DNA of 64,000 nt, taken from contig CM060732.1 of the NCBI GenBank assembly GCA_030704615.1, forward strand, positions 38,130,001 to 38,194,000. The letters run 5' to 3'. Within the stretch, counting starts at the first letter, position 1, and every line of letters starts with the position of its first letter. This document shows positions 2,714-54,738 of the stretch, piece after piece. The translations under genes and the position numbers were made by a program. Below the pieces are notes generated by a model. It did no database searches, was not told the origin of the DNA, and worked only from the letters and a program-made list of their open reading frames with translations. Source of the DNA: Takakia lepidozioides. Taxonomy: Eukaryota; Plantae; Bryophyta.

Positions 2714-2876
2714 ATGGATAAAAAAGTAACCACGGTTGGATGATATCCATCATATAAGCATCATCAAGAACCAGATGAAATAATTTCGCTTGTAAGACTG
2801 GATAAAAAAATCACCATGGTTGGATGATATCCATCATATAAGCGTCATCAAGAACCAGATGAAATAGTTTCGCTTG
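2714..2876. repeat. Tandem duplication, ~85-bp unit x2
   Basis: GGTTGGATGATATCCATCATATAAGC.TCATCAAGAACCAGATGAAATA.TTTCGCTTG occurs twice. Confidence 0.85.
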
Positions 2877-8330: not shown

Positions 8331-8570
8331 TAGTTTTAAGAAAAAATAAAAATCAGTAATATACCCTTTATTAATTTTAAATATTTTATAATTTTTGTCT
8401 TTTGTGAATAAATTGCACACTATATTTTTTTACTCGTCGGTTGGAAATTCTTGGAAGTGACCTTCCCGGGGATTTGAACGCGCCTCCCCCCCCCCCGGCT
8501 CGGGACTGCTACGCAGACCGGCAGCCATGGGAGCGTCAATCAACGCTCTCCCTCTTTGTCTCGTGGTTCG

Positions 8571-12360: not shown

Positions 12361-12509
12361 CTCATTATGGTACATATTCTAAAGGTCTATGTTTTACCAT
12401 AAATAGGGCAGTAGCGACTATATTAAGTTGATATACTTTTGATTAAAACATAAGTGATTAGTGATGTTGGAAAATATAATCTAGTAAGACGGACAGGGTT
12501 GTGGATCTG

Positions 12510-20130: not shown

Positions 20131-20343
20131 GCTATGCAAAAGGTTTTTTTTTTTTTGGCATTTACGTAGTTGTCGTCATGATCGTCAACGGTCATCACTT
20201 CTGCTCTAATTTCTGAGCAATCATTTTTTTTTTAAAAATTTGTTTTTGGGCGTTTGGATAGATGTCGTGATGATCGTTGACGATCATCATTTCTGCTCTA
20301 ATTTCTGAGTTTTTTTTTTTTTGGGTAGATGTCGTGATGATTG

Positions 20344-25967: not shown

Positions 25968-27189
25968 TTGAAATACGAAAGCACCATTGAAAGCATACAA
26001 AAACACCATTGAAACATGAAAGCACATTTGAAATTGGAACATCAATTCAAATACAAGGTGACTTAATGTTAAGAGATCCGTTCCATAATCTAATCCGGTG
26101 CTGCTACAAAAATGCACAAAACTGCAAAGTCTAAGTAGACTTCCAAATGCCTGAGCAGAAGATACATGAGCAAGCTTTGAGGCAATATAACAACAGCTTC
26201 ATTGACATATGTGAAACAAACTAACATTGCTAAGAATATGTCTAAGCACCATTACACAAACTCGATGTGTGCAAAATGGAAAATTGCAGGTAGGGAACAG
26301 TAGCATGAAATTCTTCACTGAACTGCAGCTAACACCAGCAAATGCCAGTACTGTTGGATGAGAGCTCACTACACTTAATTCATGTTAGCCCTCTCTTGCC
26401 CCAAACTGTCTAACTGCCCATTCTTATGGCACTTACACAGATTCTCTCTCAAGTATCATGAAGCTTTTATCAATAAGGAAGCCCCGAGTTACCCTGTACA
26501 TTTGAGAACTTAAAGTACTTAGCAGCACAACAAACACAACTGCTGGCTGATCAGAGAAAATGTTCCGCGTAAGGGGCATTGGCTCCCAATATAATCACCA
26601 GGGATTACAGGAACGCTATTTCTAATATCATGTAGCTATGGAGGAGGGATGAGAGAAAGATGAACAACGGAGGTCGTGATGCTTACTGTGCGTCTTCCTT
26701 CGAAGCAAAGGCTGAATGGTTGTACTTTACGTATGGAAATGACGCCACGACTAATGGCTCCATTCCCCGCAAGCTTCGATCAACCTAAAATGAAAACAGG
26801 CGTGACAAAGCCCAAGTTCATGCTGGTGCTTTCGGTGAATTGATCCAATGACTTGCCTAGACTTTCAAGTGAACCAATTTTAGTCCTCCCATCAGACTAC
26901 ATCCAACCTCCCACATTTCAAAACACCATGGCATATATATAGATGACGGGATCTAGCACTTTGTAGACGCTCACTGTTGGTTACAAGTACTGCGACTCTT
27001 TAGGCGCGAGACTGCCCAACTGCATTGTCCCAACCACCCAAGCTGCCATCCATCCCACTGCCACTTTGACTTGCTCACTCTTGTCTATTGCTCATCGTCG
27101 AGCTTCACCCCTTCCCCCATCATTTGCTTTCAGGTCTCCAAAGCCTCATCCCGCGCTCCTACTCTGCACACCCTGCAAGCATCGCGTTC

Positions 27190-27415
27190 CACGACACCAC
27201 TTCTCGTTCAGCCATAGTGTTGAACACTACCTTGCATCCTCAATGCACCCACATTTGGCATACATGTCCACCAGGACAGGGTTCAGAATGACATCTAGTA
27301 CAAATCCAGCTTTGACGATGTCACCATGGACCTCTTTCCCCTTTTCTAGAGCTCCTTGCCTTGCACACGCATTGAAAACACAAACAAACGTGATGTGGTT
27401 GGGTTTCACCCTTCG
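27190..27415 (-). pseudogene. PLS-PPR fragment (L+S motifs)
   Basis: VKPNHITFVCVFNACARQGALEKGKEVHGDIVKAG...LVDMYAKCGCIEDAR* - paralogous to the intact PPR at 52 kb, with a premature stop. Confidence 0.85.
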
Positions 27416-27779
27416 CACAGCAGTTGCTCACCAAACTGATTTAATGTAAACTCAGGGCAGGGATCCTACCTTTGAATAACATACAGAAGCAGAGAGGAAA
27501 TGGAGAGTAATTGCACCCAACTCAACTAATCACACTAGTTCCTATGGTCAATTGCATCTGCTACTCTCCGTAATCTGACAGGCATCACTTTTTTGCCTCG
27601 GTTGTCTCACCATTTACTGGGGTCAGCAGAGTATTCATCCCACAGTTTCTCCTCATATCTGTTACCTATTTTTGGATACTTTCCTGTTGTCACATTGGCA
27701 GTATCATGTCAGAGTCATTCCAAACAAGATTCACTCAACCAGCTAACTTGCAGAATTCAACATGGAAATTTAGGGCCAA

Positions 27780-27990
27780 TTCTGATAAGAAGGAAAAATA
27801 GGGTGAAATATGTTGAAGAAGGTGCCTTCATTAGCAGTGCATGATTTTATCCATTGTGCCGCTGCTGCGGCAGCTTCCAGTTGACCATCTGTTTCTTGTA
27901 GCTATCCTCCACAAGGAATCATAGGTAATCTGGAGCTTGAAATCCGGGCCTCTTGGATGAATCTGGACCCACAATCTATCCCTGCACTCC
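27780..27990 (-). pseudogene. B3-gene exon fragment homologous to 47040-47235
   Basis: GCTTCCAGTT.ACCATCT...GTTTCTTGTAGCTATC and GATGAATCT are shared with the 47.1-47.2 kb segment. Confidence 0.5.
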
Positions 27991-28699
27991 TTCAGCTATC
28001 CATGCCTGTGTACAAATCGTGAATACATCCTCAGCCTTGCTGCAGCTAGCAGCTGACACTGACGCCCTAACCCTGCCTACAGTAACATGTCAAAATCACT
28101 CCAAAACCACCATAAAGATTCACCAACGAGCTTCTCCTCATCTATGTTATCTGTTTTTGGATATTTTCTTGCTGCCACATCGGCAGTAACTTGTCAAAGT
28201 CACTCCTAACCACCACAGATCCACCCAACGAGCTTCTATCTGTTTGAGTTGAACCCTTGTATCATCGTCAAAAGAAACTTACAAATCTCTCACCTTCCTC
28301 TATTCCATCTCTCTCACACAAATAGCCAGATTGTCATCCCTTGCTATCACACTTGTGTTGATAACTAGCTAGACTCCTGCAAAATCAGCTGTGAATAACT
28401 ATGGCCACTTCACAAAGAGACTACAGAGGAAAAGGCATTGGAGATGGAGAGATAAAGATGGAGAAGACTAAGTGGCAGACTTGTCCATGGAGGAAAATAC
28501 TCAACAAACCTCTTGGTTACTAAGAGACCTTCTCCACTTGTCAAACATGGATGAGTTTGCCCTGAACCTCCCATGCCGACTGTTGCAGCCTGCGCACCAC
28601 CTCCCGAATCTAGACGTATTCCTATTTGTGCGTAAGAATAACAAAAGGAACGAGAAGAGTTCGTGTGTGCCCCTTGGCCCGATTTGGAGACCCGAAAAA

Positions 28700-29940
28700 T
28701 GGTATTTTCCAGTTTTGACGATTTCCCCATGCACCTCTTTGCCCTTCTCTAGGGCTGCCAGGCTTGCACGACACCACGTCTTGTTCAGCCATAGTGTTGA
28801 ACACTCCCTTTGCATCCTAGATGCACCCACATTTTGCAAACATGTCCACCAGGGTGTTGTTCAAAATGAAATCTGGTACAATTCCAGCTCTGAAGATGTC
28901 GCCATGGACCTCTTTCCCCTTTTCCAGAGCTGCCAGGGCAGTGTTCAGAATGACGTTTGGTACAATTCCAGCTCTGATGATATCCCCATGCACCTCTTTG
29001 CCCATGACCAGCTCTGCTACCTGCTGCTATGAGCTGCATTGTTCATGTTTGAACTCAGTTAAGTCAGCCGCCAAAAGATCAAGTTGTTCTTCAGCAGCTT
29101 TCAGGTGTGATTGGGGCAGTCCTTGAAGCACCAAAATTCTGGCATTAACTACCGTTGCACTACCCACATGAGGAGCTGCCCTCTCCTCAGCAGACTTGGC
29201 AGTCTTGCCGAGTCCAACTATCATCAGATGTAGGGTTTGTAGTTCATGTTCAGGCTCAACCACTCTGGTATGTAAAGGGCGAATTTTCTCAGTAGAATCC
29301 TTTTGCTGCACTGTCAATAGTTCAAGTGCCTCTTGTGCGTGACCTAGCTGAGCTAATCCAGCCATCATCCCATTCCATGAGATCACATCGCGCTTGGGCA
29401 ATTTTGCAAACACTTCCCGTGCATCTCCACACCCCCGCATTTGCAATACATGTTGACGAGGGCGTTCTCCATACTGACATTTGACTGAAATCCAGCTCTA
29501 ATGATGCCCTCATGGAGCTGTTTGCCTTGCTCTATCAACAATGGGCTGGAACATGCATTCAAAATGCACAAGAAAATGACCTTATCTACCTTCACACCTT
29601 CTCTTTGCATCAGATTCACTCGATTCACACAGTAAACTTATGCACCCGATTGTCAACCTCAATGCAGCTGTGCCCTGCCTCCTTTCTGACACCTTTGTCC
29701 TTCATCATTGCTCTCGCCTCTGTGGGATCACCCCACCTGCCAGCTGCAACCCCACACTTGGCATACATATCAACGAAAGTATTCTCCAGATTCAAATATG
29801 ATTCTGTTCCAACATCGATCGCAGCATGGACCTCTTTTCCCTTTTCCAGGGCTGCCAGGCTTGCACATGCATTGAGAACGCAAATGAGCATGACTTTGTT
29901 GGGCAATACCCCTTGCTCAATCATTTGCTCATAGGTCGCA
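28700..29940 (-). pseudogene. Chimeric, internally deleted PLS-PPR pseudogene with an unrelated coiled-coil insert (29030-29300)
   Basis: Repeated ALEKGKEVHGDI and VDMYAKCG motifs. An S motif is joined directly to E-domain AAGRW...KKEAGHSCIEVDNRVHKF-like sequence. Multiple frameshifts. Confidence 0.85.
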
Positions 29941-29992
29941 AGTGCATTTGGCTTTAAGCCTTTTGTTACTCTTCACATCGTACATTGAGAAA

Positions 29993-31285: not shown

Positions 31286-32862
31286 CCGTAGCCTCGTATA
31301 CGGTTGGGTAGAAATTTGCCCAATAATTATTATTTTTCTCTTTGAACGGTTGGGCAATATCACATTAAGATATCTTATTTGGGCAATCCAGTTATGAAGT
31401 TTATAATAATTTAGACAAGTCATGAGCCAAATATGTATTAATTGGGCAAAGAGTCAGTGAGTAATGAATTATCAAACCTACCAACTAGTCTTAAATAATT
31501 TATCTGATTTGAAATAAATTAGGTAGCACTGAGCCAGCTAAATTGGTCCTATAGGGTATCGACCGCTGCTGCTGGAAAACTACCATCAACTTGGGAGCAT
31601 GAAGGAAAACTCATGGCTTTTAGGGTTGCATATTTGGTCAGAATGTATAATATTCCGTCAAGTTTGGTTATCAACACATATCAAACTGGAATTCATTTAG
31701 TTCCCATGGGTGGAGAAAGAACATGGGAGAAAAAGGGGCAAAAGACATTCATGTTATTGGTGTTGAAGATAAAAGACAGATCACAACTTGTGTCTCATCC
31801 TCGGCCAATGGGAATATGCTCCCACTACAACTTGTTTTCAAAGGGAAAACATCACGAAGTCTTCCTTCTAGCCAATGTAGTAAAGACTGTGTGGCCGCAG
31901 GTTTTCACTTAACCATTTTTAATAACCATTGGTCCAATGTAGATATGTGTAAGCAATTTGTGCAATTCGTGTTGGTTCCTTATTATTGCACGATGGTTAA
32001 GGACCTGGGGCTTGGCTCTAGTCAGAAGATGATATGGCTTCTGGATTGTTGGTCTGCCCACAAATCGAAGGATTTTTTAGATTGGATGAAAGCTGAACAT
32101 CCGAAGATCTGCGTTCTTTTTGTGCCTGCAAATTGTACCAGCAAGCTACAACCTATAGATGTCATCCTTCAAAGACCTCTTAAGCATGTTTTCAAAATGC
32201 AGTATTCAGAATGGAGTTCCGCTCAAGTTCGACAACAACTTAAAAGAGAAGTTGCTCCCAAAGACGTTCGACTTGATCTTTCTGTGAAAAACTTAAAAAA
32301 CCTGGTTTGTGGTTGGTTATTACAGTCATGGAAAGATGTGGCGAGGATGGAGGGTATGATTAGAAAAGGCTGGTCAGCCTACGGACTGCTGAGACCTTTT
32401 GACGTTGAGTTTCAGAACGAGGCCATTGAATGTAATGCAACCTCTTCTTTATTTAACATAGCTCTATCAGATTTGTCTATTAGAGACTCAATCTATTGGT
32501 ACTGAATCTGAATTAGTGGTAGTTGAAGAAGAACTAGCTGAAGATGTTTCTGAAGTAATGATTGAGTGTCTCTCAATTTTCTCTCAGTTTTTTGGACCGA
32601 GCTTATGAAAAAGTAGGTTGATTTTGATTTCTTGTCATAGCCTATAGATTGACAGTAATCAGAACTATCACGATGTACTTCTATGAATCAAGATAATTTC
32701 AAAACATATTTAATCATAATTTTCAAGATTTGGGCATTTTTTGATGAAAATTTATAATTTCAGCAATTGTTTTCAATAATTTTGCATGATTGGACTATTA
32801 AGTTCTGAATTTTATAAATCCTTAAATAATCATTTTCTGCCCAACCGTATAAGAGGCTACGG
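31286..32862 (+). mobile_element. pogo/Tigger-family (Tc1/mariner) DNA transposon, internally deleted, with a frameshifted DDE_1 domain (~31555-32505)
   Basis: 29-bp TIRs CCGTAGCCTC(G/T)TATACGGTTGGG(T/C)AGAAA with TA TSD. ORF motifs: LVINTYQTG (D-motif decayed), EDKRQIT, LPLQLVFKGKT, NHWSN, WLLDCWSAH, VPANCTSKLQPIDV. The HTH N-terminus is missing. Confidence 0.92.
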
Positions 32863-33985
32863 TAATACTCTGGGTAGCTGAAACTGCTCGAGGATATATC
32901 ATATCCAATGTTTGCAGGCACGATCAAAGATGATAGTGGCCGAAGCTATAACCAAAATGTACAAAAATAATGATTTCCTGTCCAACATCGGTGGTTTCGT
33001 TTACCACACATCCTTAGCACGCCATCATGTAAGTGGATTTCTAATATTTATTAACTTTCTATACTATTGATTTGATCTTCTTGATAATTAACCATGTTTA
33101 ATACTATATAGGATTATGTGGTCTTACAAAAAAAACAATTATGCTTTATATTGACTTTGGCTTATGTTTTATGTGCAGGTGACAATGGGTTGGTTAGTTG
33201 CACCATTGGTGGCTCATATAACTCCTTGGGTATGGTGGAAATTGCCCAAAAGAAATAGCAATCATTCATGTATTATTTACATTGCCAATCCAGTTTGTAT
33301 GTTTTGTCCTCAATAGATTCAGGATTATATTCATGCAATCTCTGGGCGTAAGTATTTGCTATTGACAGCTCCAGTTACAGTACCGTTAGGGGCATCATCA
33401 AGTGCACCATCAGGTACTGCTGCATTTACTCAATCCAAAGAAGATGTGTCACATTTTCCATACAGTCGTGTTGTAGAGGCGGCGTAACCATCTACAAGCG
33501 ATCGTTGACGCCCTCGTGATACCTCATACGTTGAGTTATAGCTTCCTCATAAATATCTTAGATGTCAACGATGTAGTGTCGATTTGATGAGGAGTGTAGG
33601 TCAACGTGAGGATGTTGTTTTATCTGATCCACACAAAAAACCAAGCGTGGATACTAGAGAGTGTTTTAGGGGTGGACTCCAGCTTTAGCTACCATGGATA
33701 AAGAGGAATATACATATGCCCATGAAACTCTTGCAAGACGATAGGTAATAACCAATGAGATTGTGGAGAATGAGCTTATCACCCTTTTGCCTTCTTTAGG
33801 TGCCAACTTTTCAGGTTTGAATACAGCTGTCATAGAGACATATTTTAAGGTCAAAGCCCTACCAGATTGGGAGCGGTGGGATTACTTGGATTCATTACTT
33901 GACGATGATACTGTTATCACCATGTCTTTTGAGCAATTGCAAGGTGCGGTTTCAAGGACGCTCGCCCAACATTTTCTCCTCTCAA

Positions 33986-36900
33986 GAGAGAGAGAGAGAG
34001 AGAAGACTCCGGCCAAAGCCGGCGTAACTAAGAGCCACTTCGCCTTATGGCTACTGCCCCCTTTCGAGGGTGGGCCCTATAAAGAGAACATGTGTCCAGG
34101 GGACACCAGGTAACCAGGAGGAGGTAGTAAATAGGGTAGCGGTGCCTAGGGTATCTGGGGTACCCTAGGATGCCGCAGAGGGGTTGGACTCGAGTTGTCG
34201 CTTATTGGTGATGATGGCAGTGAGGGAGCGGAGCTCAGTGAGGTGGATGGCTTTAAAGCATTTGTGGATCGGGGGGATAGGGATTTTAAGATTGTCGTGT
34301 AACGCGTTTATACTGGCGGTGTGAATCCCACCTCTAGTACCGGCTATGATAATTGATAGGAGGCCGGTGCGCCATCCACGCTGGCGGATGGCGAGGATGA
34401 GGGGGGCATATTTTTGTCGTTTCTCTAGGGTGGAGGGCTGGGTATCGGTCATTACAGTATGTGAATTCAACGAAGTGAATGGTTAATTCTGGGGAAGGGG
34501 AAGTGGGTAGGGGGGCTTTGATGGGTAAGCCTTGGACAAGTAGGATATCCGGGCAGAGCCAAGAGGGACAGATGCAAGATGAGTGATGACAAGTACACGG
34601 AAGTATCTCGTGAGGGACAGTGTGGTCAGGGGGTTGGCCTTGGTAGGTACCAGCATTGATGAGTGAGAACCATCTGGTTTCTGATCTGGACATGAGAAGT
34701 TTATGGATGTGCCAGACTGCGTGATTATGGCGAGTGACGCGGAGACCATGTATAACGGGGTGAGTACACTAACTAAGGAGGTAGGGCTAGGTGTCACGTA
34801 CTGTATGTGTATGTGAGCATAATGGGCAGTTGGGGAATGGGAATAGGCGTGGCCAGAAGATGTGTTTGCGTTGGTGTCCCATGTATTGGGCGTAACGAAA
34901 TCTGAGTGTTTGTCAGATTTGCGCGTCGGTGACAGTCTCGGTGCACCAGAAGTAGTTTGACAATTTGTGGTGAAGAATTGTAGATTGTGTCCATTTTTGG
35001 ATATGGGCTTTGGTATGGCTGGTAGAGGCTGAGCTTGTTTGTGTGCCTCGCATAAGTGGATTTTAGGTTATGTATGGGCTTGGTAGTAGGGGTCATGGTA
35101 CTGGGTAAATTAGCCAGAATGGGTAAGTGAGAGCAATATGGATGGGGCCGGCCGTAGGGTCCAGTGGGGGTTGGGCGGCCCCTGCCTGGGCGAGGCGGTC
35201 TGCATTTTCGTTACCGGTGATACCAGTGTGGGAGCGAACTTTGAGAAAGTGTATGGGGTGATTAGTGGAAGCCGCACGGTTAAAGATAGCTCCAATGAGG
35301 TTCCGGTCTGGGTGATGAAGGTGGCAGGAGGGGCTAGAGAGATGGTTGCGAAGAAGAAATAGTGAGATAAGGTTGTCGATGAAAATGTAGTATGGGGGGG
35401 AGAAGGAGGGCAGCTAGGAGAGTGCTTCAAAGATTGCCATAAGCTCAGCGTGTAATATAGTGGCTGGGCCTGGAAGTTTAAGAGCTACCCCACGGTTATT
35501 AGCAGCATGAAAAATACCGTAGCCAGCGTTAGAGCCAGATTGGGAGCTATCTGTGTAGTGGGAGTATGAGGAAGAGAATTTGAGCGGCAGACGTAGATGT
35601 GAGACCGGTGGGTCAGTAGGGGGCGGGAGAGAGGTAGGAGAAGGGCGCGGTAGCGCCCTTATCCAGGCCTTGCTTGGGTTGACTCTGGGAAACAAGGTGG
35701 GTAAGGAGCAAGATGTAGAGGGAAGAGGATGTGTGTTGGGGGTAATTGAGACTTTCATCCCCCATGTGCGTACGAGTAAGTGGTGTAAGGTAGAGGGGAG
35801 GGTGATGAGCATGGAGGTGGGATAGGTGTGTTGGACAAGTAGCAGTGACGTAGTGGTGGGTTCTAAGCGTCGGAGGTATTTAGAGAAGGGGAGGTTGTGT
35901 TCGTATAGTAGCTGGTTTGGTTCAAAGGTGGCTAGAAGGGTGACGCCGTGAGGGAGTTGTAGAAGGGGGTGGGGGTTGTTTGGAGGCCTCTGATGTGTAA
36001 GTAGGAGAATAGTACAGGCAGAGGGGGAGGAGTGAGCAGCAGTACGAGCCCATTGGAGGGCTTCTTGTATTTGGGAGTCAGGAGGGTGAGCAAAGCCACG
36101 ACCGGACCACCTGTGCTGGGTGGCAAGACTAGTGGCGCCAAAGATGCAGTCTCTATGGTGTGGGCTAGCATATGAGGTAAGTTCCATTGGGCACGTGAGT
36201 GGGCTAGAGTAGTAGGAGTGAGTAAGTTGGAAGGAGGAGATTAGGAGGCTAGACAGTTCTCTGGGGATTGTACTGTGAGTGTGTGCTTGTATTAGTTTGG
36301 ATTGGACGCGGGGTTTTTTGGAAGGGACTTAAGGTAACGGTCTAATAGCCAATAGATTTAAGTAATGAAATCTTGTCTGGGTGGCAGTATCTGATATGCC
36401 TGTGGGTTAGGAGTAGAGTATTTATGCCAAAGCCACGCTAGCCGATCACGCCAATGTATCGGCCGTTGTGGGCATGGATTTTTGACCGCTGAGGGCCTTG
36501 ATAGATTAAGGTAGAGTCATGGGCAATGTCTTTATCATGGTTACATTCGGTAGTGTTGATGTGAGGAATGGCGAGCGGGTAAGGAATGTTGCGGGTGTTT
36601 GTGAGTTGTGCCTAGGAGACATGTTGCTGGTGAATGTATGTCAGGTAGTTAATGTTGGTACGTTTATGGAACGCATAAGCAGGGCGAGGTTGTGGATGGG
36701 GTCACAGTCGTCGTGTGAACCAAAGAGGTCATCCTCAATTTGCCAAGTGTTGTCATTTGAGGAAAAACCGGCTCATTTGCATAGGTAGTACGTATCCAGA
36801 CATGTAGCGCCAAACGCGTCAGTTGATGTCTGGGTTCTGACCCCGAGAATGTCTTCAATAATGAAGGCGATGGAGTTGTTAGGATCGGCACTATAAGTGG

Positions 36901-39900
36901 GAGAACACGGCGGGGGGGATGGGGGATTTTGTCTACCTTAGTGTTGTAAGAAGCAGGGGAGAGAGTGGGGGAGGTTTGAGTGCGCGAGAGAAGGGGTGGT
37001 GGTGGGCTGACAGGGTTATGACTAGGGGCGGTATGGGTATGCGGTGAGGAGTAGGAGGGGGAGGGGGCTGTGGCGCAGGGGAGAGTGTCGATGGTACCGG
37101 TATCCTCGGTATGAGAGGATTTAAGCGTTTGTAGGATAGAGGGGGCAGGGGCGGTACGAAAGGCGGGGAGTAGATCCTACGGACTGTGGGGGAAAAGAAG
37201 ACAGGGTAGGTCACATTCAAGGAAACATGAGGCCGATGGGTGGCAGAATAGGGTATGGAGGTGGTTAAGGAATCTGCAGGTTTTGGAAGTGGCTCTGGAA
37301 TGTTTAAGGGTGAATTCTACGGGGGTCAAGAGGTGGTTGCCGGTGGCGGTGGTGAGCTGGGTGAGGGTCGTGATGTGTCGTCCTTTGAAATATTTGATGA
37401 TAAGTATTTTTTGGCGGGGGAACTTGCGTTCGAATTGGGAGAGGAAAGGGCTAGTATGCCAGGCCTGTTCGAGGGGAGATATGGATTTGGGATAATGAGG
37501 GAGATCGGTTTGCACACTGGTTTTCAACTGGCGGAGTATGAATAAGGAGCGGGCGGTAGGGGAATGGAGACAAGACTGTGAGTGGAGGAAAGGTAGTGAG
37601 TGAAGTCCATTATACTTGGAGGCCAGGTGTTTGAGTAGCCCACTGTAGATGAGACCTAGACGACCCGGGTCGTTGAGGGCTTCGAGTAGTTGGGAGCCAA
37701 AAGTGCGCGAGTATGATATTATTAAGGGACTAGTACCGATGCCATAGCTATCCGTGGGGAGTTGAGTAAGAGCATTGGGAGTGCTAGTGGGGAGACCACA
37801 AATGGGCTTAGTGAGTTGGATGATTTGTCTATCGATTTGGATGATGTCAGGGAGGGAGAAGGGAGCCGCATGGAAGGAGTATTGGACTTGTGGTTTTAGG
37901 ACAGATTCTATGTGAGAGAGTTTGTGCTCAAGGATGGCAAGGTCAACCGCATAAGCGGCAGCAAAAATTTCGTTTGAGGAAGTTTTGTATTGGTATCCAA
38001 GTTTGTCGTGTGCAATCCATCTGAGCAAGGGTTCAAGGAAAATGATAAAGAGGTAAGGACTAAGGGTGTCGCCTTGGATAGTGCCTCGTAGAATCGGGAT
38101 GAGAGGGGTTGAACCATAATATAAGCTTGTATATTCCGTGGAGCTGTTAGTGTAAATATTACCGATGAGTTGTATAGCGTCTGATGGGTAGCCTAGGTCT
38201 GTCATAATGGCGAGTAGACGCGGGTGGTCTAAGGCGCCGAAAGCATTTTTGAAGTCGATATATAGGAGATATATATCTTGTTTTGTGAGTTTGGCGTCCT
38301 CTAGGCGGATAACACATATTGTATTTGTCTGGTAGTGCTACGTGTGGCGCGGAAGCCTTCTTGCGGGTCACTAGGAATGCGGGGTGGTGTTCACCACAGT
38401 TGACCACATCTTGGTAAGGATGCTGGTAAATAGTTTATAGATAGTGTTAGCGAGAGCAATGGGTCTGTAATTGCTAAGGTCCGTAGGGTCGCCTTTCTTG
38501 AAGAGGAGAATGGTGCAGCTATGCTTCCATGTGTGCGGGATCCGGCGGAGTTGGTAGCAAAGTTTAAAAAATTTGAAGAGTGGCTTTTTTAGCGTCTCTG
38601 CCCAGCTTGGAGAGGGCAGCAATCAAGCTAGGAAGATTGGAGGGGTCATTGGGAGGGGGCATGATCGGGCTGCAGACAGACAAGGAGTTTAAGCATGAGG
38701 TACGGGGATCGGAGCGCCAGTCTCTGTGTAGGGAGGGTGGAAGAGTTAGGAATATCGGTGAGAGCTCTGCGGATAGTGTGATAGGTGTTTAGGTGGGAGG
38801 TCCAGGCCCGCCTTTGTGAACAAGTAAGACATCCCCCGTTTTGTTTAGAGCGGGAGGTTTGGGGCAGGTCCGGGGGAGCGGCACACGTGGCGAGAATGCT
38901 TTTGGTCATTTGTAGTAAGGTGGAAGAGAGGGTGAGCTCTGCTTTGAGCCAAATATTGTCGGGTTCCTGTGAGAGGTTCGTATCAGAGAGGATATGGGAG
39001 AGGTTTTGTGTTAGGATAGGTTAGAAATGGTTTTGGAAGGCTGTGATGTTATGTTTGAGTAATGAAGATAATGATCCTAGGTTGGGGAGGGGGGGTAAGG
39101 ATAGAAGGGAGGGGGCGGAAGGGAACAAGGCCGGAAGGGGGAAAAGAGATTGATACTGGGTAGTGGTTGGAGTTACAAATGCTGTCAATGTGAATGTGGC
39201 TGCGGAGATAAGACGAGATCTCGGTGCTGGTCTTGAGACAGAAACCATCAAAGAGGCTGAGGGAGTAGTGGAGACCACCTTGCCTGGAATAGTGGTGATC
39301 TGCGGGTATGTAGCTAAAGTGGTGTTGTTGAAAAATTGGCCCAATCATGATCGGAAGAGGATGGGGGTTGGTGGAGCCTTTAGGAGTGTTCAAGGAGGGC
39401 AATATCTCTGTTGAAGTCACCAGCGAGAATGTAGTGGTGATGGTGCTGATAAGGGTGGGTAATCGTAAATTGGAAATTGCAAGCATAATATATGGGGTTA
39501 GTTGGAGGTCATTAGTGTGGGAGGGCATGTATAGGTGAATGATGGTAATTGGGTAAAGAGCAGGCAAATAAAGTTGGAGAATTTGGAGATGAAGCGAAGA
39601 GGGATGAAGACGTTCACCTTGGTGGTGGTGTTGGGAGGGTGATGGGTACGTAGGATGCCAATGGCAATGCCTCCCCGGGTGGGGCTGTATGGGGTCGAGC
39701 GCGCCTAAGACATTGCGGAGCTGACAAAGGGTTGCCATACATGAAATAGTATGTCGGGAGTAGCTTGTTTATGTATGAGCTGTTAGGCGTGTTAGGGTGT
39801 AGTTTTAATTTCTTGTAGTAGAATAATGTGCGGGGAGATGGAGGGTGATTGCAGCCTACAGTGTTCCTTTTTTGACGTAACTTCGTCATTTTTCCTGTAC

Positions 39901-42755
39901 ATAGTTTGTTGGTTTGATCTATACATCTTATATTTCTATGAAATTTGTTTAAAAGGGACTCATCAACATTGTACCTATCTACAGTAGTATCTCAGACTTG
40001 CCGCCAAAAAACCGTTATCTCTAGAAGTGATGGACTTTATGAAAAAGTCCATAAGTTTGTTACAGTCCATACAAAACTTGTTATGGACTCATTATATGTT
40101 AGATTTGTTAATATAATTGGAATAAAGGACTTGGTCCTCCTTGCTATTATGATAAAGAATCTAGTGTGAGAGTTTTTTAATATTTTTTACTCATTAAACT
40201 GAAATTTTATGTACTTTATCAACCTACAAATAACAACCATTTTCAAAAGTCCTTTACCCCATATAAAAACCAAAACACCCCATGAAACTGTCTTCATTAA
40301 ATACAACCATTTATTATAGAGGAAGAGTGGGCAAGATCAAATTTCAAAAACATGTACTTTTGTGATTATGGTCAAGTTTGGATTACGGTCCACCGATGAC
40401 ACATGACGACATATATCCTCCATAGCATCTTTCTTTTTCCCATTGAAATTGACAGTATCCCAACAATAGACGTTCACATGATATAGTGCAAGTGAATCCT
40501 GTTTTTGGCTTTTTGTTTTCACGATTTTTGTTTTTTTATCTTATGTACTTTATGTAGGCCACATCTTCAACTTTTTGGTCCACTCTTTGTTGCAATACCC
40601 TGGAGTCTGTGAGAAGGTGTATGAGCTTGTATACTAGTGGCCATAGAGCCAACATTCCAGTGATGATGTTAAGGGGTTGGTATTTAGATTGTAGGCGGAG
40701 GAGAGAGGGGGGCGGGAGAGGGGTGTAGGTGCATGTGAGTGAGTAGGTGAGGGTGGGAGGGTTGGGGAGCTATGAATCCCGGGAGGGGGGTTATTGCCTT
40801 TAAGGTGGCAGAGAGGATGTCGTTGGATAAAAATGGAATTATTAGAGAGGGCTGGCAGGTCTTGAGTCGGGGAGTAAGTGAGGCAAGATGGTCGCCTAAT
40901 CCAGGTTTGGATTGAGGAGTTGAAACGAGGAGTATAACGAGGAGGTGGTGTGAGGGCTAGGTAATTGTTGGGGAACGGGGGCAATTTATGTAGGTTGCGT
41001 AGTAGGGAACGGAGTTAGGAAATGGAGTGAGATTCAAAGTAGATGTTACATGTCTCGGATAGCGGGGAGGATAGGAATGTATGAGGGGCAAAGAGGATGT
41101 GTTGGGTGGGGAAAACCTTGAGTTTGTGTGTGGCACGGGTAAGAGTTGGGAGATGATAAGCGGGAAGGCCAAAGGTGGAGATTTGGTGTGGAGGGGGAGT
41201 CTGATGTGTGGGGTTAGAGGGAGAAGGTTTGGGGAGGAGGGGGAGACGTGGTCAGATAGGTGTGGTATGGGAGTGAGGGAGATGGTGTGTTTTTTGGAAT
41301 ATAAAGCATCCTGTCTTTGGGCCAGCGGGTAATTGCCAAATGATATCATCTATAGAAGAGGGCCCTGGGTGGATGTCTCTACATCTGAGAAGTACGAGGT
41401 CAATACATGTCACTCTGTATGCCGTGTCGGGTGAGGGGGGATGATGGTAGTAGTGCTTGGATTTTAGAGGGTTTTGAGGGCGGGTTCCATGTGGGTGAAC
41501 GGCGAATGTAAGGGGGTCAATATGTATTTGATAAGGTATTTTGGAAAGGTGGAGATAATTGGGATATGGTTGGATTATGTGAATAGGGAGATAAGGAATG
41601 CGTGGATGGGACATAGATTTGGAGGTTGGTTGGTGAATATGAGGAATTGTGGAGCTGGTGGTTAATGAGTGAATTGGGGATATATATTGGGGATAAATTG
41701 GGTTGGGGTGATAGATATACCAAAACTTTGAAGTTTTTGGCACGATATTTAATGAGGATATTGAGTATTGGGTATAAGGGTGGGGTGGGTGAGTGATTGT
41801 GGATGATGGTCGTGGTGTATTGCGACGGTGGGGGAGGAACTTAGAGGCTCGTTGAAGCTCCTGGTCCTCGTGATGTCATTCCACATGTGCTGAGTGTGCG
41901 CACCTGGAAAACCCCATATAAGACTCGTTCTCGGCAAGTTGGAGTGCTGGGTAGAATGTGCGGAATCATTGGGATATTTTGGCTTGTCTCCAACGCAAGA
42001 GCAGATCAGGGTCATGAGTAGCATGTACCAGACAGCTGCCTACGTATAACGAGTGGTGGGGAAGCCCGGGCCGGTGGCCATCGGAAGGAAGTCGAATAAC
42101 GTTGAAACGGAGCTGGAATGCCTTGCTGAGCACCGAACTGGATTGAAAAAACGCCAAAATCACCTTGATGGCTTGAGTGCAAGTCGTCAAAAAACTGGTC
42201 CAAGGTCAAATAAATCAGATCGTTGCGAGGAGGAGCTTGTAAGGACTACCAAAGAATACCTATGAGGTAGTCCCTCGCCAACGCAGTGTCGACTGTGTAA
42301 AGAGCGGACAAACTCCAAGCTGTAGAAATCAATTAAATGATCATGTAGATAGAAGCATTATAAAGAGCAGCAAGATTGGTACCGCTGCAAAAGAAGCGAA
42401 CTAAGTCACACAACTGAAGCCCGGAGATAAAAGTGTCTAAAGTGGGGGAGACAAGATGAAATGAGGCTACAAAACATTGAGAAGAAGCGCAGTAAGAGCA
42501 TGAACAGGCAGAGAGAGGGCCAAATCAAGCTGTAGTAAGCTAGTAGCGAGCAACAGATTAGAGAGCTTGAGTGGGAGCCATGGCGGCGGGCTTGGCTACA
42601 GCAGATAGTGAGTACTAAACAGGAGGGGCCGCCAGTCAGGGGTAGTAAAAAACACTAGGGATCGGGGGAGGATAGCGGAACCCTATAAAATAGCAGTTAG
42701 CAGGAGATGTAGCAGAGAGTTGAGCGGGAGAGCACGGAGCTCCGCCCTCCCGACA
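33986..42755 (-). mobile_element. Full-length decayed dual-endonuclease LINE (Dualen/RandI-type): APE-RT-chromodomain-PCIF1-like MTase-RNase H-CCHC-RLE
   Basis: APE: IITWNV-like, ILLQE, LAGDFN, SNHYPV. RT: KKGDPTDLSNYRPIALANTIYKLF, IDFKNAF, RGTIQGDTLSPYLF, YAVD. RNase H: YTDSS, HAELMAI, KVRSHTGITGNENADRLA. CPLC..DT..LL..C then RHNHAV. RLE: PDILLV..VEFTYC..KYAPL. (TC)n tail; 4-bp TCAA duplication at 33982-33985 and 42756-42759. Confidence 0.9.
39859..40602. mobile_element. AT-rich insertion splitting the LINE APE domain (hAT-like termini)
   Basis: Abrupt composition change. Ends CAGTGTT... / ...ATACCCTG. APE coding sequence resumes on both sides. No clear TSD. Confidence 0.55.
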
Positions 42756-44584
42756 TCAACGATGTGTGAGTCAAGGGTGATATCTAGCATTGAGTATCTT
42801 TCAACAACTTCTCCCCTCAACAATGTTGCAATCATGGTGAAAATGCTTCAAAGTTGGCAGGAAGACAAGCTCGCAACTGTAAAAAATATAGAAGACAACA
42901 AAATACTAAAAGCTTACAGGTACAAAGAAGAATGTTGGCAAAAATTATCGATGGCATACCTCAAAGCCGTCACATTGAAGGACTACAGAGAGTTATACTT
43001 ACAACTGCCACCGACTTAGTTAATGTTATGTCCTATCTCTCTTTCTCTTTTAATCATTGACATAAAATGTCACATAATGAATGAAACATAATCAAAGTCG
43101 TGAGTAGATTCTGCAATATTGTTGTATATATTTTTAAATTCTGACCATGTCAGTTACAATGTAGGTGGACCAAGGGAAATAGGTGAAAGATCTTCGCAAT
43201 CATTATTTACGATGCAAAACGGAGAAGACGGTGTTATCTCCTCTTAAGATCATCCCAAAGTACAATCTAGATGGGCATGAGCTGATTGATTCCATTGATG
43301 TGGAGCAAGGCGGTCCGACAGTGTCTGCCTTGAGTGCAGCATGGAGACAATTTTTCAATGATATGGGGATAAATCAATTTTTTTGTAAACTCATTACACA
43401 CTCGAATTTTTTTAGTTTTAATCTCAATTACTGTTTAATTATAATCTCTTTCTGCATGATGATTTTGTCTTCTTTGTTGAAATCACTCACACTATTATGC
43501 AATGTACTTAGATTTTCAGATATGCGGTGGGATGCTGCAAATGGGAGAAAGAGGCAATGTTCTTCATTTCAAATCTTTGAGAGGCTGTGTCTTGGATCAC
43601 AGAAGATCATTCTAGGTGAATATGAGATTCAAACTTAATTCCATTTATTGATGGACATCATCTCTCTCTATTGGCGAGATGCATGGACTACTATCTAGAG
43701 CACAAAGACAGGGAGAGAACAAAAAAAGCTAAGAGAGAATCACACACAACGTGTACATGAAATTATGAGATAGATAAACTACAATCATGAATCAAGAGCT
43801 AGATGTATTTTTATTTGTCTTTACAAGATTTGTGAATGATGGCCTATTTGTGGATGGCGGGGAAGACCAATTTCCTTGGACATTTCCTGTTTTTGTTGGC
43901 TGTTCATGGGGTCCGAGTAGCACTATTAGCTACAAATGCCATTATAGCTCATGTGTGTGGTCGAGTGCAAGCAAATGAATTTGACAAAGCTATGGATGGA
44001 AAAATCTGACTACAAATCATATAGCCCGCTTCATAGAGCATGCTAAATGTACTATGAGTTACATATGAGATTGAACAAATGAAGCACAAAAGGCTATACT
44101 TGAGGAGTCAGGATTGGGGGACTTGTCCTACTTAGTATCTCGGATAGTTCCTATTCACACTTTTGTATAATAAATTCCATGCTAGAGAGGGGATATACTC
44201 AAGTTTTATAACTAATAAATAGATTACCATGTCTTGTAGATATATGAAGTTTTAATTGACAAAAGCAGGTTGATTGGTGATGTTGTGCAGGAAGGATCTC
44301 GTTGCAGTATTGAAAGTCTCTTGAGTATATAGAACACATCGACACAGCACATGCCATAAAAAGAACATCAATGACTTGAGCCGCGAGACACTAGATGTGG
44401 TCTTCACTGCGGACCATGGCGTAGAGACAAATGATTTTCTTAATTGTTGCCGCTCGGGGGACTGTCCATGATCATGGAGGTAAGAATGTGTCACAATTTC
44501 ATCTTTAGGGTATGTGTTTTAAATATCTTATAATAGATGCTTGAATTGTATCTCATATGATTTTAGTGACAATGATAATGTAGG

Positions 44585-44967
44585 GCCCTCTAGATAGTTC
44601 GTAGGGCCCTCATGCTTAACAAAACACACCCTTCGAGCTCCTTCTCGATACTAGTGGCCGCCATACGGCCATCACCAACCTGTCAACTCCTCCTCTCCGG
44701 GCTCACTCCTCGTGGGCCGCTAACGAAAGGATTTAGTTGGGTCTCTCTCCGTCAGAGTTTGTGGGTTCGCCTTGCCAATCTTGCCGTGTTAGCTTTATGG
44801 CCCCTTGGGGTTTCATCAGATAGAAGACTCCGGCGGAAGCCGGCGTAACTAAGAGCTACTTCGCCTCACGGCTACTACCCCCTTTCGGGGGTGGGCCCTG
44901 TTTTTTTCCCATCATTAATAAAAATTCGAGGGCTTCTTCCCCTCTTATTAAAACAAAAAAAAAAAAA
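44585..44967 (+). mobile_element. Short poly(A) retroposon containing an antisense copy of the LINE 3-prime end motif
   Basis: A-tail at 44955-44967 and AATGTAGG TSD (44577-44584; 44968-44975). 44822-44899 differs at about 7 of 78 positions from 34001-34078. Confidence 0.7.
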
Positions 44968-46139: not shown

Positions 46140-46540
46140 CTTCCAGATGACCATCTAAACACTCTTTTGCATCTTTTGACACTCCCACCTTTGGCATACA
46201 TGTCCACAAGGGTAATGACATCTGGTACAATCCCAGCTTTGATCATGTCACCATGGACCTCCTTGCCCTTTTACAGGTCTGCCAGGCTCGCACACGCACG
46301 CAAACGAATGTGACCTGGTTCGGCTTCACCTCTTCCCTTCAGAGCACTCCAGGACACCAAAGTTTGTTCAGCCATAATATTGAGCACTCCATTTGCATCT
46401 TTGATGCTGCCACATTTGGCATGCACGTCCACAAGGGCAGTGTTGAGAATGACATGTGGTACAATTCCAGGTTTCATCATGTCACCATGGTCCTCCTTGC
46501 CCTTTTCCAGGTCTGCCAGGTTTGCACATGCAGCTGTTAC
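46140..46540 (-). pseudogene. PLS-PPR fragment
   Basis: ACANLADLEKGKEDHGDMMKPGIVPHVILNTALVDVHAKCGSIKDA..., followed by a second frameshifted L/S pair. Confidence 0.85.
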
Positions 46541-52197: not shown

Positions 52198-54738
52198 TTG
52201 GGGTTATGCAGGATGGCCGGGTCGAATCAGGCACAGTTTTTTGAATCTGGCACCTCCTCGACGACAAATGCTTTTGAAACAGGAGCAGGAGAGGGACTCA
52301 ATAAGAACCTTTCTGGCACTGCTGTGGCTGTGGTTACACTTTGTGAGGCAGAACAAGCCAAACAGGCACTGCACATTTTGAACCAGCAATTCATTTTGGC
52401 AGACTCCAGTACTTACTTGTGCATTTTACAAGGGTGTATCAAGACTAAAGATCTAGAAACGGGAAAGCAAGTGCATGCCCACATTATCCAAAATGGATTC
52501 GAGCCAAATATCCGTCTACTCAACACCCTTGTCAACTTGTATGGCAAGTGTGGGAGCCTGGTGGATGCACGGCAAGTGTTTGATAAAATGCCTAAACGAA
52601 ATTTGTTTACGTGGACTATAATGATAGCAGGATATGCCAAACGTGGATGTGGGTCTGAGGCTTTTGAGATCTATGAGCAAATGCAGCAGGAAGGGATGAC
52701 TCCCAACAGGGTGACGTTCATTTGCATTCTCAATGCATGTGCTAGCCAAGGAGCCCTTGAAAAAGGTAAGGAGATCCATGCCAGTATCCTTGAAGCTGGA
52801 ATTGCGCCAAATATCGTTCTGGAGACTGCCCTTGTTGCCATGTATGCAAAATGCGGGAGCATGGAGGATGCGCGTCAAGTGTTCAACAACATGGCCAAAC
52901 AAGATGTGATCTCATGGAATGCGATGATTGCAGGATACGCTCAGTGTGGGTGTGGTAGAGAGGCTCTCAGGATGTATGAGCAAATGACACAGAAAGGGTT
53001 GCTGATGGATAAGGTCACATTCATTTGTGCTCTCAATGCATGTGCCAACCTTGGAGCCTTAGAGAAAGGCAAAGAGGTCCATTCTGACATCATCAAAGCT
53101 CGAGTTGCGCCAGATGTTGTTCTCCAGACAGCCCTTGTAGACATGTATGCTAAATGTGGAAGTGTAAAGGATGCACGCGGAGTCTTTGACAAAATGGCTG
53201 AACGAAATGTGGTGTCATGGAATGTGATGATTGCAGGGTACGCTCAACATGGACATGCTAGGGAGGCTTTTGAGAGCTACAAGCAATTGCAATGGGTAGG
53301 GGTGAAGCCCGACAGGGTCACATTCATTAGCGTACTCAATGCATGTGCTACCCTAGGATCCCTGGAATTAGGCAAAAAGATCCATGTTGACATCATGAAA
53401 GCAGGAATTGTGTCATATATAAATTTGGAGAATACCCTTGTCAACATGTATGCCAAGTGCGGGAGTGTAATGGAGGCACGTCAAGTGTTTGACAATATGG
53501 CTCAAAGAACTGTGGTCTCTTGGAATGCTATGATTGGAGGATATGCTCAGCATGGGTTTGGTAGGGAAGCGTTGGAGATCTATGAGCAAATGCAACAGAA
53601 AGGGGTGACTCCCAACAGGGTCACATTCACTTGTGTTCTGAATGCATGTGCAAGCCTGGCAGCCCTGGAAAACGGCAGAGAAGTCCATACTGAAATCATC
53701 AAAACTGGAATTGCACCTGATATGATTCTGGAGACTGCCCTTGCTGACATGTATGCTAAATGTGGGAGCATGAAGCATGCACATCAAGTATTTTGCAACA
53801 TGCGTAAGCGAAGTGTGGTCTCTTGGAATGCAATGATTGCAGGATATGCTCAGAATGGGTGTGGCAGAGATGCTCTCCGACTATTTGGACAAATGCAAGA
53901 GGAAGGCTTGAAACCGGATGATATCACCTTTATATGTCTTCTCTCTGCATGTAGCCATGTGGGCCTGGTGGAGGAAGGGCATCACTACTTTCATTCCATG
54001 AATCAAGATCATGGCCTCATTCCTACAGTGGAGCATTTTGGGTGCATGGTGGATCTTCTTGGCCGTGGAGGGCGATTGGATGAGGCAGAGGACTTCATTA
54101 ACAAAATGCCATTAGAACCAGGTGCTACGGTGTGGGGGGCCTTGCTTGGTGCCTGCAGAAGTCATGGAGATGTGGAGCTAGCAGAACATGCAGCAAAATG
54201 CCTTCTCAAGTGGGTTCCACAGGATGCTGGAACTTACGTGCTGCTATCAAACATCTATGCTGCAGCTGGCAGGTGGGATGATCAAGCGAATGTGAGAAAA
54301 ATGATGGAGGACAGAGGTGTTAAGAAAGAGCCAGGGTGCAGCTGCATAGAGGTGGACAGCCGGGTGCATGCATTTGTTGTAGGAGACAAATTGCATCCAC
54401 AAATTGAAGAAATCCATGCTGAGCTGAAGAGGTTGTATGAGCAGATGAAGGAGGCTGGGTATGTCCCGGACACGCACTTTGTATTGCATGATGTGGAGGA
54501 GGAGCAAAACGAATTTTCGCTATGCCACCACAGTGAGAAGCTGGCCATTGCTTTTGGGCTGATCAGCACTCCCCCTGGGGTGCCTATCCGTGTCATCAAG
54601 AACCTTAGGGTGTGTGGCGACTGCCACAAGGCCACCAAGTTCATCTCAAAGATTGTTGGGCGAGCAGTTGTAGTAAGGGATGCCAACCGCTTTCACCACT
54701 TCAAAAACGGGGTTTGTTCTTGTGGGGATTACTGGTGA
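52198..54738 (+). CDS. PLS-class PPR protein with E1/E2 and DYW cytidine-deaminase domain (organellar C-to-U RNA editing factor)
   Basis: Uninterrupted 846-codon ORF with regular L-S-P triplets, PG box (PGCSCIEV), HSEKLA, CGDCH and terminal CSCGDYW. First ATG is at 52213. A TGCAG acceptor just before it suggests an upstream exon. Confidence 0.97.
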   Translation: MGLCRMAGSNQAQFFESGTSSTTNAFETGAGEGLNKNLSGTAVAVVTLCEAEQAKQALHILNQQFILADSSTYLCILQGCIKTKDLETGKQVHAHIIQNGFEPNIRLLNTLVNLYGKCGSLVDARQVFDKMPKRNLFTWTIMIAGYAKRGCGSEAFEIYEQMQQEGMTPNRVTFICILNACASQGALEKGKEIHASILEAGIAPNIVLETALVAMYAKCGSMEDARQVFNNMAKQDVISWNAMIAGYAQCGCGREALRMYEQMTQKGLLMDKVTFICALNACANLGALEKGKEVHSDIIKARVAPDVVLQTALVDMYAKCGSVKDARGVFDKMAERNVVSWNVMIAGYAQHGHAREAFESYKQLQWVGVKPDRVTFISVLNACATLGSLELGKKIHVDIMKAGIVSYINLENTLVNMYAKCGSVMEARQVFDNMAQRTVVSWNAMIGGYAQHGFGREALEIYEQMQQKGVTPNRVTFTCVLNACASLAALENGREVHTEIIKTGIAPDMILETALADMYAKCGSMKHAHQVFCNMRKRSVVSWNAMIAGYAQNGCGRDALRLFGQMQEEGLKPDDITFICLLSACSHVGLVEEGHHYFHSMNQDHGLIPTVEHFGCMVDLLGRGGRLDEAEDFINKMPLEPGATVWGALLGACRSHGDVELAEHAAKCLLKWVPQDAGTYVLLSNIYAAAGRWDDQANVRKMMEDRGVKKEPGCSCIEVDSRVHAFVVGDKLHPQIEEIHAELKRLYEQMKEAGYVPDTHFVLHDVEEEQNEFSLCHHSEKLAIAFGLISTPPGVPIRVIKNLRVCGDCHKATKFISKIVGRAVVVRDANRFHHFKNGVCSCGDYW

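Follow-up and report, generated by a model that had tools for sequence, protein, structure and literature searches.

A decayed, probably Dualen-type LINE with chromodomain and PCIF1-like modules in Takakia lepidozioides

What kind of element occupies the minus strand between about 34 and 43 kb of the 64,000-nucleotide stretch of Takakia lepidozioides contig CM060732.1 analyzed here (the window), and what might a chromatin-reader-like domain and a methyltransferase-like domain be doing inside it? An earlier note, made from the letters of the sequence, had described a long interspersed nuclear element (LINE) with two nucleases, an apurinic/apyrimidinic-type endonuclease (APE) and a restriction-like endonuclease (RLE), and with a chromodomain and an adenine methyltransferase related to PCIF1 in the same polyprotein. 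Our analysis indicates that minus-strand positions 33986 to about 42801 are probably a single decayed retrotransposon without long terminal repeats (non-LTR) of the Dualen type, characterized by APE plus RLE, and an old end-to-end insertion in a land plant. The architecture and homologies of the element, which is about 8.8 kb long including a later insertion of 0.75 kb, are near certain. The window copy is dead and has no function itself; its value is that of a complete anatomical specimen.

Architecture of the element and its relatives

The order of the modules was determined from stop-to-stop translation of the minus strand, from Pfam searches and from alignment to better-kept relatives. It is collinear, running from a 2A-like peptide through APE, reverse transcriptase (RT), chromodomain, PCIF1-like domain, RNase H, CCHC motif and RLE to a 3′ untranslated region (UTR) and a (TC)n tail, and all modules listed in the earlier note were located at or near the minus-strand positions it gave. 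From the chromodomain to the E motif of the RLE, every landmark motif lies in one frame within the window copy. From about 34.0 to 42.0 kb the plus strand has a strong excess of G over C (skew 0.3-0.6), which makes the coding minus strand rich in C and poor in G (A 26%, C 37-40%, G 9-13%).

One of the RT fragments matched by the RT piece of the window led to a far better preserved collinear copy (L001) on a 368-kb ENA contig. It contains the 2A peptide motif GDIETNPGP, APE, an RT with the YADD box, a chromo-like stretch, the PCIF1-like domain, RNase H and CCHC/RLE. With the PCIF1-like protein P0121 as query, HMMER searched exhaustively and retrieved 324 proteins (E <= 1e-3). Single open reading frames (ORFs) among the relatives include one of 3459 amino acids (aa) that encodes Exo_endo_phos, RVT_1, PHD, PCIF1_WW, RNase H and a CCHC/RLE tail (P0232), and another with RT, PCIF1_WW (E 1e-13), RNase H and RLE (P0243). 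In three proteins that match the window at E 1e-125 (P0137, P0154 and P0272), the PCIF1-like domain is joined to RNase H, CCHC and RLE. In P0126/L003 it comes after a chromodomain, and P0208 joins the RT C-terminus to chromo-like and PCIF1-like stretches. Relatives thus show the same order within single ORFs, so the modules are neither out of frame with one another nor secondarily inserted, an outcome that the earlier note had named as one that would refute it. These ORFs bear out a dual-endonuclease LINE whose one polyprotein includes a chromodomain and a genuine homologue of PCIF1. Loci with an RLE and no PCIF1-like domain were all 5′-truncated copies and are for that reason uninformative as counter-examples. 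As protein-search queries, the PCIF1-like piece of the window found one protein, and residues 1-120 of P0126 returned only P0126 itself.

The sense strands of the window element and of L001 are both G-poor, but the window subfamily is C-rich whereas L001 is A-rich (A 42%, C 22%). Their proteins consequently differ strongly, being high in P/S/T/H and in K/N/I, respectively. In three JGI metagenome contigs (L004, L005 and L006), a different LINE lies beside a P0272-type copy on the opposite strand; it has intact Exo_endo_phos (546 aa) and RVT_1 (803 aa) ORFs and lacks a PCIF1-like domain, which suggests that the P0272-type source organism holds another, apparently intact LINE family.

The N-terminal part of the element, which like all its features is read on the minus strand, includes an open stretch at 41255-41875 that has no Pfam match and ends in a decayed 2A-like peptide. 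The window sequence LVLLRCRDIHPGP at 41398-41360 aligns with the canonical LILLRSGDIETNPGP of L001, with RDIHPGP in the window at the place of GDIETNPGP, about 220-250 aa before APE. Judging from the only two family members with 5′ parts, the family carries a predicted 2A-type skip peptide of the form D-[VI]-E-x-N-P-G-P. No Pfam domain was found upstream of the L001 2A peptide or in residues 400-985 of P0232. Residues ~440-590 of the latter show by eye an OTU/papain-like cysteine-protease signature ('GDCYFDSL' ... 'GHYTPL') that Pfam does not match, and which would fit the cysteine protease reported for algal Dualens.

APE is preserved in two parts. Its N-terminal 'WN' block lies at 40570-40668, with HWNVGS at 40662-40645 corresponding to 'IISWNVSLLN' of L001, and the remainder occupies 39052-39935 over three frames (LLQEIK, IIHLYMPSH, ILAGDFNRD, YSRQGG, SLFDGF), with 'HIILLQEIK' at 39830-39804 and the domain continuing to about 39052. 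These pieces match L001 APE in tblastn at E 1e-5 to 2.5e-17. The L001 domain reaches E 3.9e-5 and 23.9 bits for Pfam Exo_endo_phos (cut-off 24.5), its N-terminus matches exonuclease III/APEX1 (E 0.003), and P0232 is above the cut-offs for both Exo_endo_phos and Exo_endo_phos_2. The matches place a predicted APE-type endonuclease N-terminal to the RT.

The RT (37180-38622) matches Pfam RVT_1 at E 1.4e-11, is 53% identical to that of L001 and matches hundreds of RT fragments in the protein collection. Against the PDB, the L001 RT scored 100 bits with R2 (E 9e-28) and about 50 bits with L1 ORF2p. The RT is thus not that of an ordinary L1, a grouping the earlier note had thought would count against its proposal. 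The predicted membership in the Dualen clade rests on the architecture and on this likeness of the RT to R2. Downstream of the RT, as in Dualen/RandI elements, is a predicted RNase H (35180-35583) with one internal stop and the motifs YTDSS, AELMAIFEAL, IFIDN and GNENADRLA, which aligns to L001. Two pieces of it match Pfam RNase_H (E 1.6e-5 and 0.04), with E 4.5e-13 for L001 and E 1e-13 to 1e-19 for other relatives.

A linker at 34712-35005 carries CCHC (NCPLCS ...) and RHN (TRHNHAVW) motifs at 34831-34712, aligned in A2 and A4, and is followed by the RLE (34183-34711), which has a frameshift near 34440, the motifs CPDILLV, HFVEFTYCNDR, KRQKYAPL and IIIAGTRGG, and PD...E at 34555-34445. In an alignment of 20 RLE-region sequences (A4), 12 of them from open frames in metagenome contigs, the near-invariant columns are C, RHN, PD, E, D and K-x2-KY. 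A profile of the CCHC/RLE region matches the corresponding region of R2 proteins (E 4e-5). An AlphaFold (AF2) model of the P0137 RLE (pLDDT 85, pTM 0.82) has the helix/strand order of the PD-(D/E)xK type; its top seven Foldseek matches are R2 retrotransposon proteins (probability 1.0, TMq 0.53-0.58), followed by cap-snatching endonucleases, a restriction enzyme and Prp8. Profile, conserved columns and model, with the ORFs of P0137 and P0272 (RNase H and PCIF1-like domain included) and of P0232 (APE and RT as well), support a CCHC plus PD-(D/E)xK RLE C-terminal to the RT in the same ORF. The earlier note had named a C-terminus lacking a PD-(D/E)xK fold as a refuting result, and the predicted R2-type fold speaks against it. 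Single-sequence PDB searches with P0121, the L001 RLE piece and the P0232 C-terminus gave nothing useful, and profiles were needed.

The 3′ UTR (34004-34167) closes with about 82 nt (34082-34004) that include CCCUC-GAAA-GGGGG and CCGGC-UUUG-GCCGG hairpins, the former recurring in L010, L011 and L054 with changes that keep the pairing. The element ends without poly(A) in a (TC)n microsatellite, (TC)9, at 33986-34003, and the tails of its relatives are (TCTA)n, (TTC)n or (TCT)n. RandI elements also end in microsatellites (PMC3747384), and the tail type is that of Dualen/RandI. Just past the tail, at its first flanking base, begins the 3′ copy of a putative target-site duplication (TSD) (33967-33985, minus strand, TTGAGAGGAGAAAATGTTG); its 5′ partner (42802-42820, minus strand, TTGAGGGGAGAAGTTGTTG) was the best local match of the 3′ flank when compared with 41900-43400, and the copies, read as 42820-42802 and 33985-33967, are identical at 16 of 19 positions. 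Going by this TSD, the 5′ end more likely falls at about 42801, which is 46 bp farther out than the previous estimate of 42755. The view that the boundaries are intact therefore holds in that both ends are recognizable, with the 5′ limit shifted. The region at 41900-42801 is probably the 5′ UTR; its composition (G 19%, T 32%) is unlike that of the coding part.

Several observations weigh against reading the locus as one complete Dualen-type element. The chromodomain, APE, RLE and 2A pieces of the window have no Pfam match individually, so the first three assignments rest on homology to better-kept relatives. The RT was placed by its PDB scores against R2 and L1 ORF2p, a proxy for grouping with named Dualen/RandI elements. 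The TSD is moderately significant only, its score being equaled by 9 of 500 shuffles and by 15 of 500 random 61-mers from the window. The 5′ 0.9 kb (42801-41900) showed no homology to relatives and is counted as part of the element on the strength of the TSD alone, lying between it and the G-poor coding part. Folding energies of the 3′ hairpins were no better than those of shuffles, leaving recurrence in relatives as their sole support.

The chromodomain and the PCIF1-like domain

The chromodomain (36671-36865) reads AFIIEDILGV ... YYLCK*AGFSSNDNTWQIEDDLF, with a stop at the putative cage tryptophan of relatives, and is 49% identical to P0126/L003 over 39 aa. The open frame of this relative (L003:54-419) matches Pfam Chromo (PF00385) at E 1.3e-11 (44.6 bits), and its chromodomain matches 48 PDB chromodomains at E <= 0.01, including those of CDYL2, SUV39H1, CBX1/HP1 and LHP1. 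The L003 sequence MYLCHWQGYPDSEDTWEPEENLF aligns with YYLCK*AGFSSNDNTWQIEDDLF of the window. The W and Y of L003 'HWQGY' align with those of CDYL2 'RWKGY', where the window has a stop at W and F at Y. The first cage position is presumably the Y of L003 'AYIIE' (F in the window), assigned by eye against the HP1 sequence. The match to methyl-lysine readers agrees with the earlier suggestion of a putative chromatin-reader domain.

The PCIF1/CAPAM-like domain (~35960-36444) is recognizable by HSYYSSPLTCP, HHRDCIFGA, RWSGRGFAHPPDS and ALQWARTAA. The window piece itself matches Pfam PCIF1_WW (PF12237) below the cut-off of 31.1 bits (E 0.004, 17.1 bits), compared with 36.4, 38.4 (L001), 51.7 and 32.9 bits for relatives. 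A profile of 31 family domains (A1) matched zebrafish and human PCIF1 in the PDB at E 3.7e-6 and 0.004. In an AF2 model of P0121 (pLDDT 79), the top six Foldseek matches were all PCIF1/CAPAM and nothing else was significant (probability 1.0, TMq 0.50-0.55, TMt 0.24-0.27, about one quarter of PCIF1 being covered). Profile and model thus indicate both homology to PCIF1 and a shared fold.

The earlier note had described the domain as an N6-adenine methyltransferase and hence a possible writer, a role that the residues aligned with the catalytic motif disfavor. The family sequence G-x-G-x-A-H-P-P-[D/N] falls on S-G-S-F-E-A-N-P-P-F of PCIF1, and the window has A-H-P-P-D; in most of the family the motif is A-H-P-x-[N/D]. 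Among ~121 family domains, the Asn position of NPPF is His in 86 (71%), Tyr in 13% and Asn in 2%, the first Pro is kept in 90 (74%), the next position is T, P or H, and the aromatic fourth position is N, D or T. The WW domain had no match in any relative, and the helical cap-groove domain is absent from the family domain, which at about 200 aa corresponds to about one quarter of the PCIF1 structure; both losses also speak against a writer. Other motifs are kept, namely [FY]SSPLTC (FASPLNC in PCIF1), D-x-IFGS (D in 104 of 124) and the helix A-I-H-W-A-R; the Trp aligned to PCIF1 W588 is likewise retained in 71 of 82. In PCIF1, W588 and E558 contact the m7G cap and NPPF is catalytic (PMC13290413, PMC8287941). 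Mutations in NPPF inactivate CAPAM/PCIF1, and in METTL16 and METTL5 altering the first, or the first and last, residues of the motif abolishes activity (PMC8287941). Insect Pcif1 with an altered catalytic motif has no methylase activity in vitro and is still biologically functional (PMC10158991).

Because the catalytic motif is replaced while other motifs are conserved, a writer role appears unlikely and binding likelier. That the PCIF1-like domain serves as a conserved module for binding, without catalysis, is in our view about an even bet, and the alternative offered in the earlier note, that the domain binds the element's own RNA, is the better guess. Under this proposal, the APE and RLE nucleases would make the two strand cuts, and the chromodomain may steer the complex to methyl-lysine-marked chromatin, as in chromoviruses; this steering is suggested by the closest matches being of the HP1/CDYL/SUV39H1 type and by the aromatic positions kept in the best relative. 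The PCIF1-derived domain would act as a non-catalytic binder of the element's own RNA, of a capped 5′ end or of S-adenosylmethionine (SAM), given that NPPF has lost its N and F, that the WW and cap-groove domains are gone and that SSPLTC, D-x-IFGS and the W588 equivalent are kept. Pairwise dN/dS over the domain of 0.13-0.45 among five relatives and 12 open RLE frames in metagenome contigs indicate selection in its favor, although the dN/dS values are rough because dS is saturated.

Other observations weigh against this assignment of roles. The L001-type chromo-like region yielded no chromodomain on its own search and is homologous to the L003 chromodomain only through profile comparison (probability 96.5%). 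The distant P0232 has a PHD finger at the chromodomain position; with the chromodomains of relatives, this makes a chromatin-reader module ahead of the PCIF1-like domain seem, by sequence, a recurring theme. N-P-E-Y occurs only in the rare distant relatives P0249 and P0265, and hints that the captured PCIF1 ancestor was active. A His conserved where PCIF1 has Asn might nonetheless permit chemistry.

Were the domain a working methyltransferase with the variant site H-P-P-[N/D], it might modify element RNA, cDNA or target DNA and form a reader-writer pair with the chromodomain. It is under purifying selection, its motifs aligned to FASPLN and D-x-FGS are kept, His holds the Asn position in 71% of domains, N-P-E-Y of P0249 and P0265 is near the canonical N-P-P-[FY], and PCIF1 is reported to act on DNA in vitro (PMC9178792). 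Yet PCIF1 and its relatives lose activity when either N or F of NPPF is mutated (PMC8287941), most of the family domains have N or D in place of the aromatic fourth residue, insect Pcif1 with motif changes is inactive in vitro (PMC10158991), the PCIF1-like domain of DIRS1 was judged inactive for like changes (PMC4738411), and the model covers about one quarter of PCIF1 (TMt 0.24-0.27), all of which makes an active enzyme quite unlikely. The stretch could instead be a structural spacer that sets RT/RNase H geometry and has no ligand of its own, as the lost catalytic motif, the absent helical cap-groove and WW domains and the lack of any partner identified in this analysis would allow. However, SSPLTC, D-x-IFGS, W-x-G-x-G-x-A-H-P and the W588 equivalent are conserved beyond what a spacer needs and persist among relatives just 25-30% identical overall, and we regard a spacer as rather unlikely.

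A mosaic would require a chromovirus chromodomain and a DIRS-type methyltransferase domain to have been inserted secondarily into an ordinary LINE, in frame by chance. The window copy is full of stops and holds at least one genuine foreign insertion (39.87-40.6 kb), and other classes of retrotransposon also carry chromodomains and PCIF1-like domains (PMC2864245, PMC4738411), but many independent relatives have this order of modules in unbroken ORFs, the chromodomain-to-RLE landmark motifs share one frame in the window copy, and the G-poor composition is uniform across modules. A mosaic origin is accordingly extremely improbable, and a non-catalytic binding module remains our preferred reading. 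A bolder extension, in which the chromodomain and the PCIF1-derived domain would be a working pair, the one choosing the landing site by histone methylation and the other, with its altered fold (H-P-P for N-P-P-F, cap-stacking Trp kept), then capturing the capped 5′ end of the element's own transcript or depositing N6-methyladenine on RNA or DNA through a non-canonical active site, is in our judgment rather improbable.

Decay, abundance and genomic surroundings

The earlier verdict that this copy is dead stands. The YADD box has become YAVD ('AAAYAVDLAIL', 37962-37930), and comparison with L001 reveals a deletion of about 100 aa directly after it (L001 residues ~264-370). Many stops and frame changes occur across the element in the stop-to-stop translation. 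An AT-rich later insertion of about 0.75 kb (39870-40600, limits approximate; GC 0.33), in which the GC skew vanishes, splits APE between WN and QE(T/I)K, leaving about 840 nt there versus 24 aa in L001. At both of its edges the insertion translates as '...RLQ...', perhaps a remnant of a target duplication that it made. G/A on the plus strand accounts for most differences between the window copy and its genomic relatives, as expected from C-to-T decay of the C-rich strand.

Contigs of a DNA run from the same organism were aligned to the window at 80% likeness to give summed contig depths, which are not copy numbers. These were 85-140 in the flanks, 400-3,300 in the RT-APE part, 7,000-13,000 at 34.2-35.0 kb and about 108,000 in the last 200 nt. 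Because depth rises so steeply toward the 3′ end, the family is highly repeated and 5′-truncated in LINE fashion, and scores of contigs break at 34080-34082 into unrelated sequence. Very roughly, the genome would hold tens of RT-region equivalents and about a thousand 3′ tail equivalents. None of the runs recorded as RNA contains the stretch, and contigs from a run guessed to be RNA match it at 80-95% only.

The last 82 nt are also found by themselves. A second, isolated copy of the tail, with 90% identity, lies at 44818-44899 (minus strand); it ends in TCTTCTATCT, and the sequence before it is A/T-rich and unrelated. In the DNA run the 82-nt unit is about 10 times deeper than the neighboring 3′ part. 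It could be a solo product of extreme truncation, a tail common to several subfamilies or a tiny LINE parasite.

Elsewhere in the window, an intact intronless gene at 52198-54738 (plus strand) encodes an 846-aa PLS-class pentatricopeptide repeat (PPR) protein with E, E+ and DYW domains (PPR_2 E 4e-102, DYW_deaminase E 4e-44), of the organellar RNA-editing-factor type; its internal repeats of about 303 nt are the D1 repeat family. This intact PLS-E-DYW gene is consistent with the earlier view of the element as belonging to a land-plant family. PPR-gene-like fragments at 27189-29941 and 46214-46532 lie in inverted orientation to 52.6-54.4 kb (70-84% complementary) and are direct repeats of each other; they are likely to be paralogues of the PPR gene, now decayed, that lie on the other strand. 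Immediately upstream of the LINE, a 260-aa ORF at 31723-32505 (plus strand) with a DDE_1 (pogo/Tc1-type) transposase (Pfam E 2e-10) is a DNA-transposon remnant. A further ORF of 297 aa at 58443-59336 (plus strand) contains DUF1664 (Pfam E 2.3e-43). A perfect tandem duplication with a 417-418-bp period occupies 20344-21180 (D3, D15, 100% identical) and adjoins T-rich short repeats at 20147-20389.

Significance and comparison with known systems

The element is probably a Dualen-type LINE, with two accessory domains unusual for LINEs. In a partial literature search, we found no report of a PCIF1-like domain or chromodomain in a non-LTR element, and nothing relevant on Dualen/RandI in bryophytes or lycophytes. 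Dualen elements, the sole LINEs to combine an ancestral nuclease (RLE) with a derived one (APE), are known mainly from green algae, and a large land-plant family, recently intact to judge from open frames in metagenome contigs (12 open RLE frames), extends their range. Under the bolder working-pair reading, DIRS1 elements and Dualen LINEs, two retrotransposon classes that are unrelated, would each have captured the same cellular enzyme in parallel, and cap capture, if it occurs, would favor cis-preference and full-length copying. If the chromodomain tethers integration to marked chromatin, LTR and non-LTR elements would have converged on the same targeting trick. The conserved, catalytically altered PCIF1 fold offers a tractable case for learning how a retroelement might use a dead cap-methyltransferase, whether to capture RNA or a cap, to sense SAM or as a mimic.

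The closest known systems are Dualen/RandI elements; according to published descriptions, only the Dualen clade combines APE and RLE (PMC9977147, PMC3708506, PMC4640811). The element shares with them an N-terminal APE and a C-terminal CCHC/RLE around the RT, an RNase H that follows the RT, one giant ORF, a microsatellite 3′ tail (PMC3747384) and an RT nearer to the R2 type than to the L1 type. It differs in its land-plant host, with relatives from metagenome contigs, and in carrying a chromodomain and a PCIF1-derived domain after the RT and before RNase H; neither appears in the published domain list for active Chlamydomonas transposable elements, Dualen included, which gives RT, RNH, APE, RLE, JCP and others and no methyltransferase (PMC9977147). 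Close to the N-terminus the family also bears a predicted 2A-type peptide, Pfam revealed no cysteine protease, and the putative 19-bp TSD contrasts with the hundreds of bp of Chlamydomonas Dualen-4b_cRei.

The nearest parallel for the PCIF1-like domain within a retrotransposon is DIRS1, whose 'MT' domain Iyer, Zhang and Aravind (2016) assigned to the PCIF1 clade, judged inactive and proposed to bind template transcripts or mimic PCIF1 (PMC4738411). Both polyproteins carry a PCIF1-clade methyltransferase fold with substituted catalytic positions, but our element is a LINE with APE/RLE rather than a tyrosine recombinase element, and its domain lies upstream of RNase H. With PCIF1/CAPAM itself (PDB 6IRV-6IS0), the family shares a profile match at E 3.7e-6, the best fold match and the equivalents of FASPLN, D-x-FGS and W588, whereas NPPF is A-H-P-x-[N/D], the WW and helical cap-groove domains are missing and the length is about 200 rather than about 500 aa. 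Chromoviruses (Ty3/Gypsy, PMC2864245) likewise fuse a chromodomain to the integration machinery, presumably for chromatin tethering, but at the integrase C-terminus and not in the middle of a LINE polyprotein. R2 (PDB 8GH6, 9NL2, 9DOU), the best PDB match of the RT, resembles the element in its C-terminal CCHC, RHN and PD-(D/E)xK motifs, but is specific to rDNA and has no APE, RNase H, chromodomain or PCIF1-like domain.

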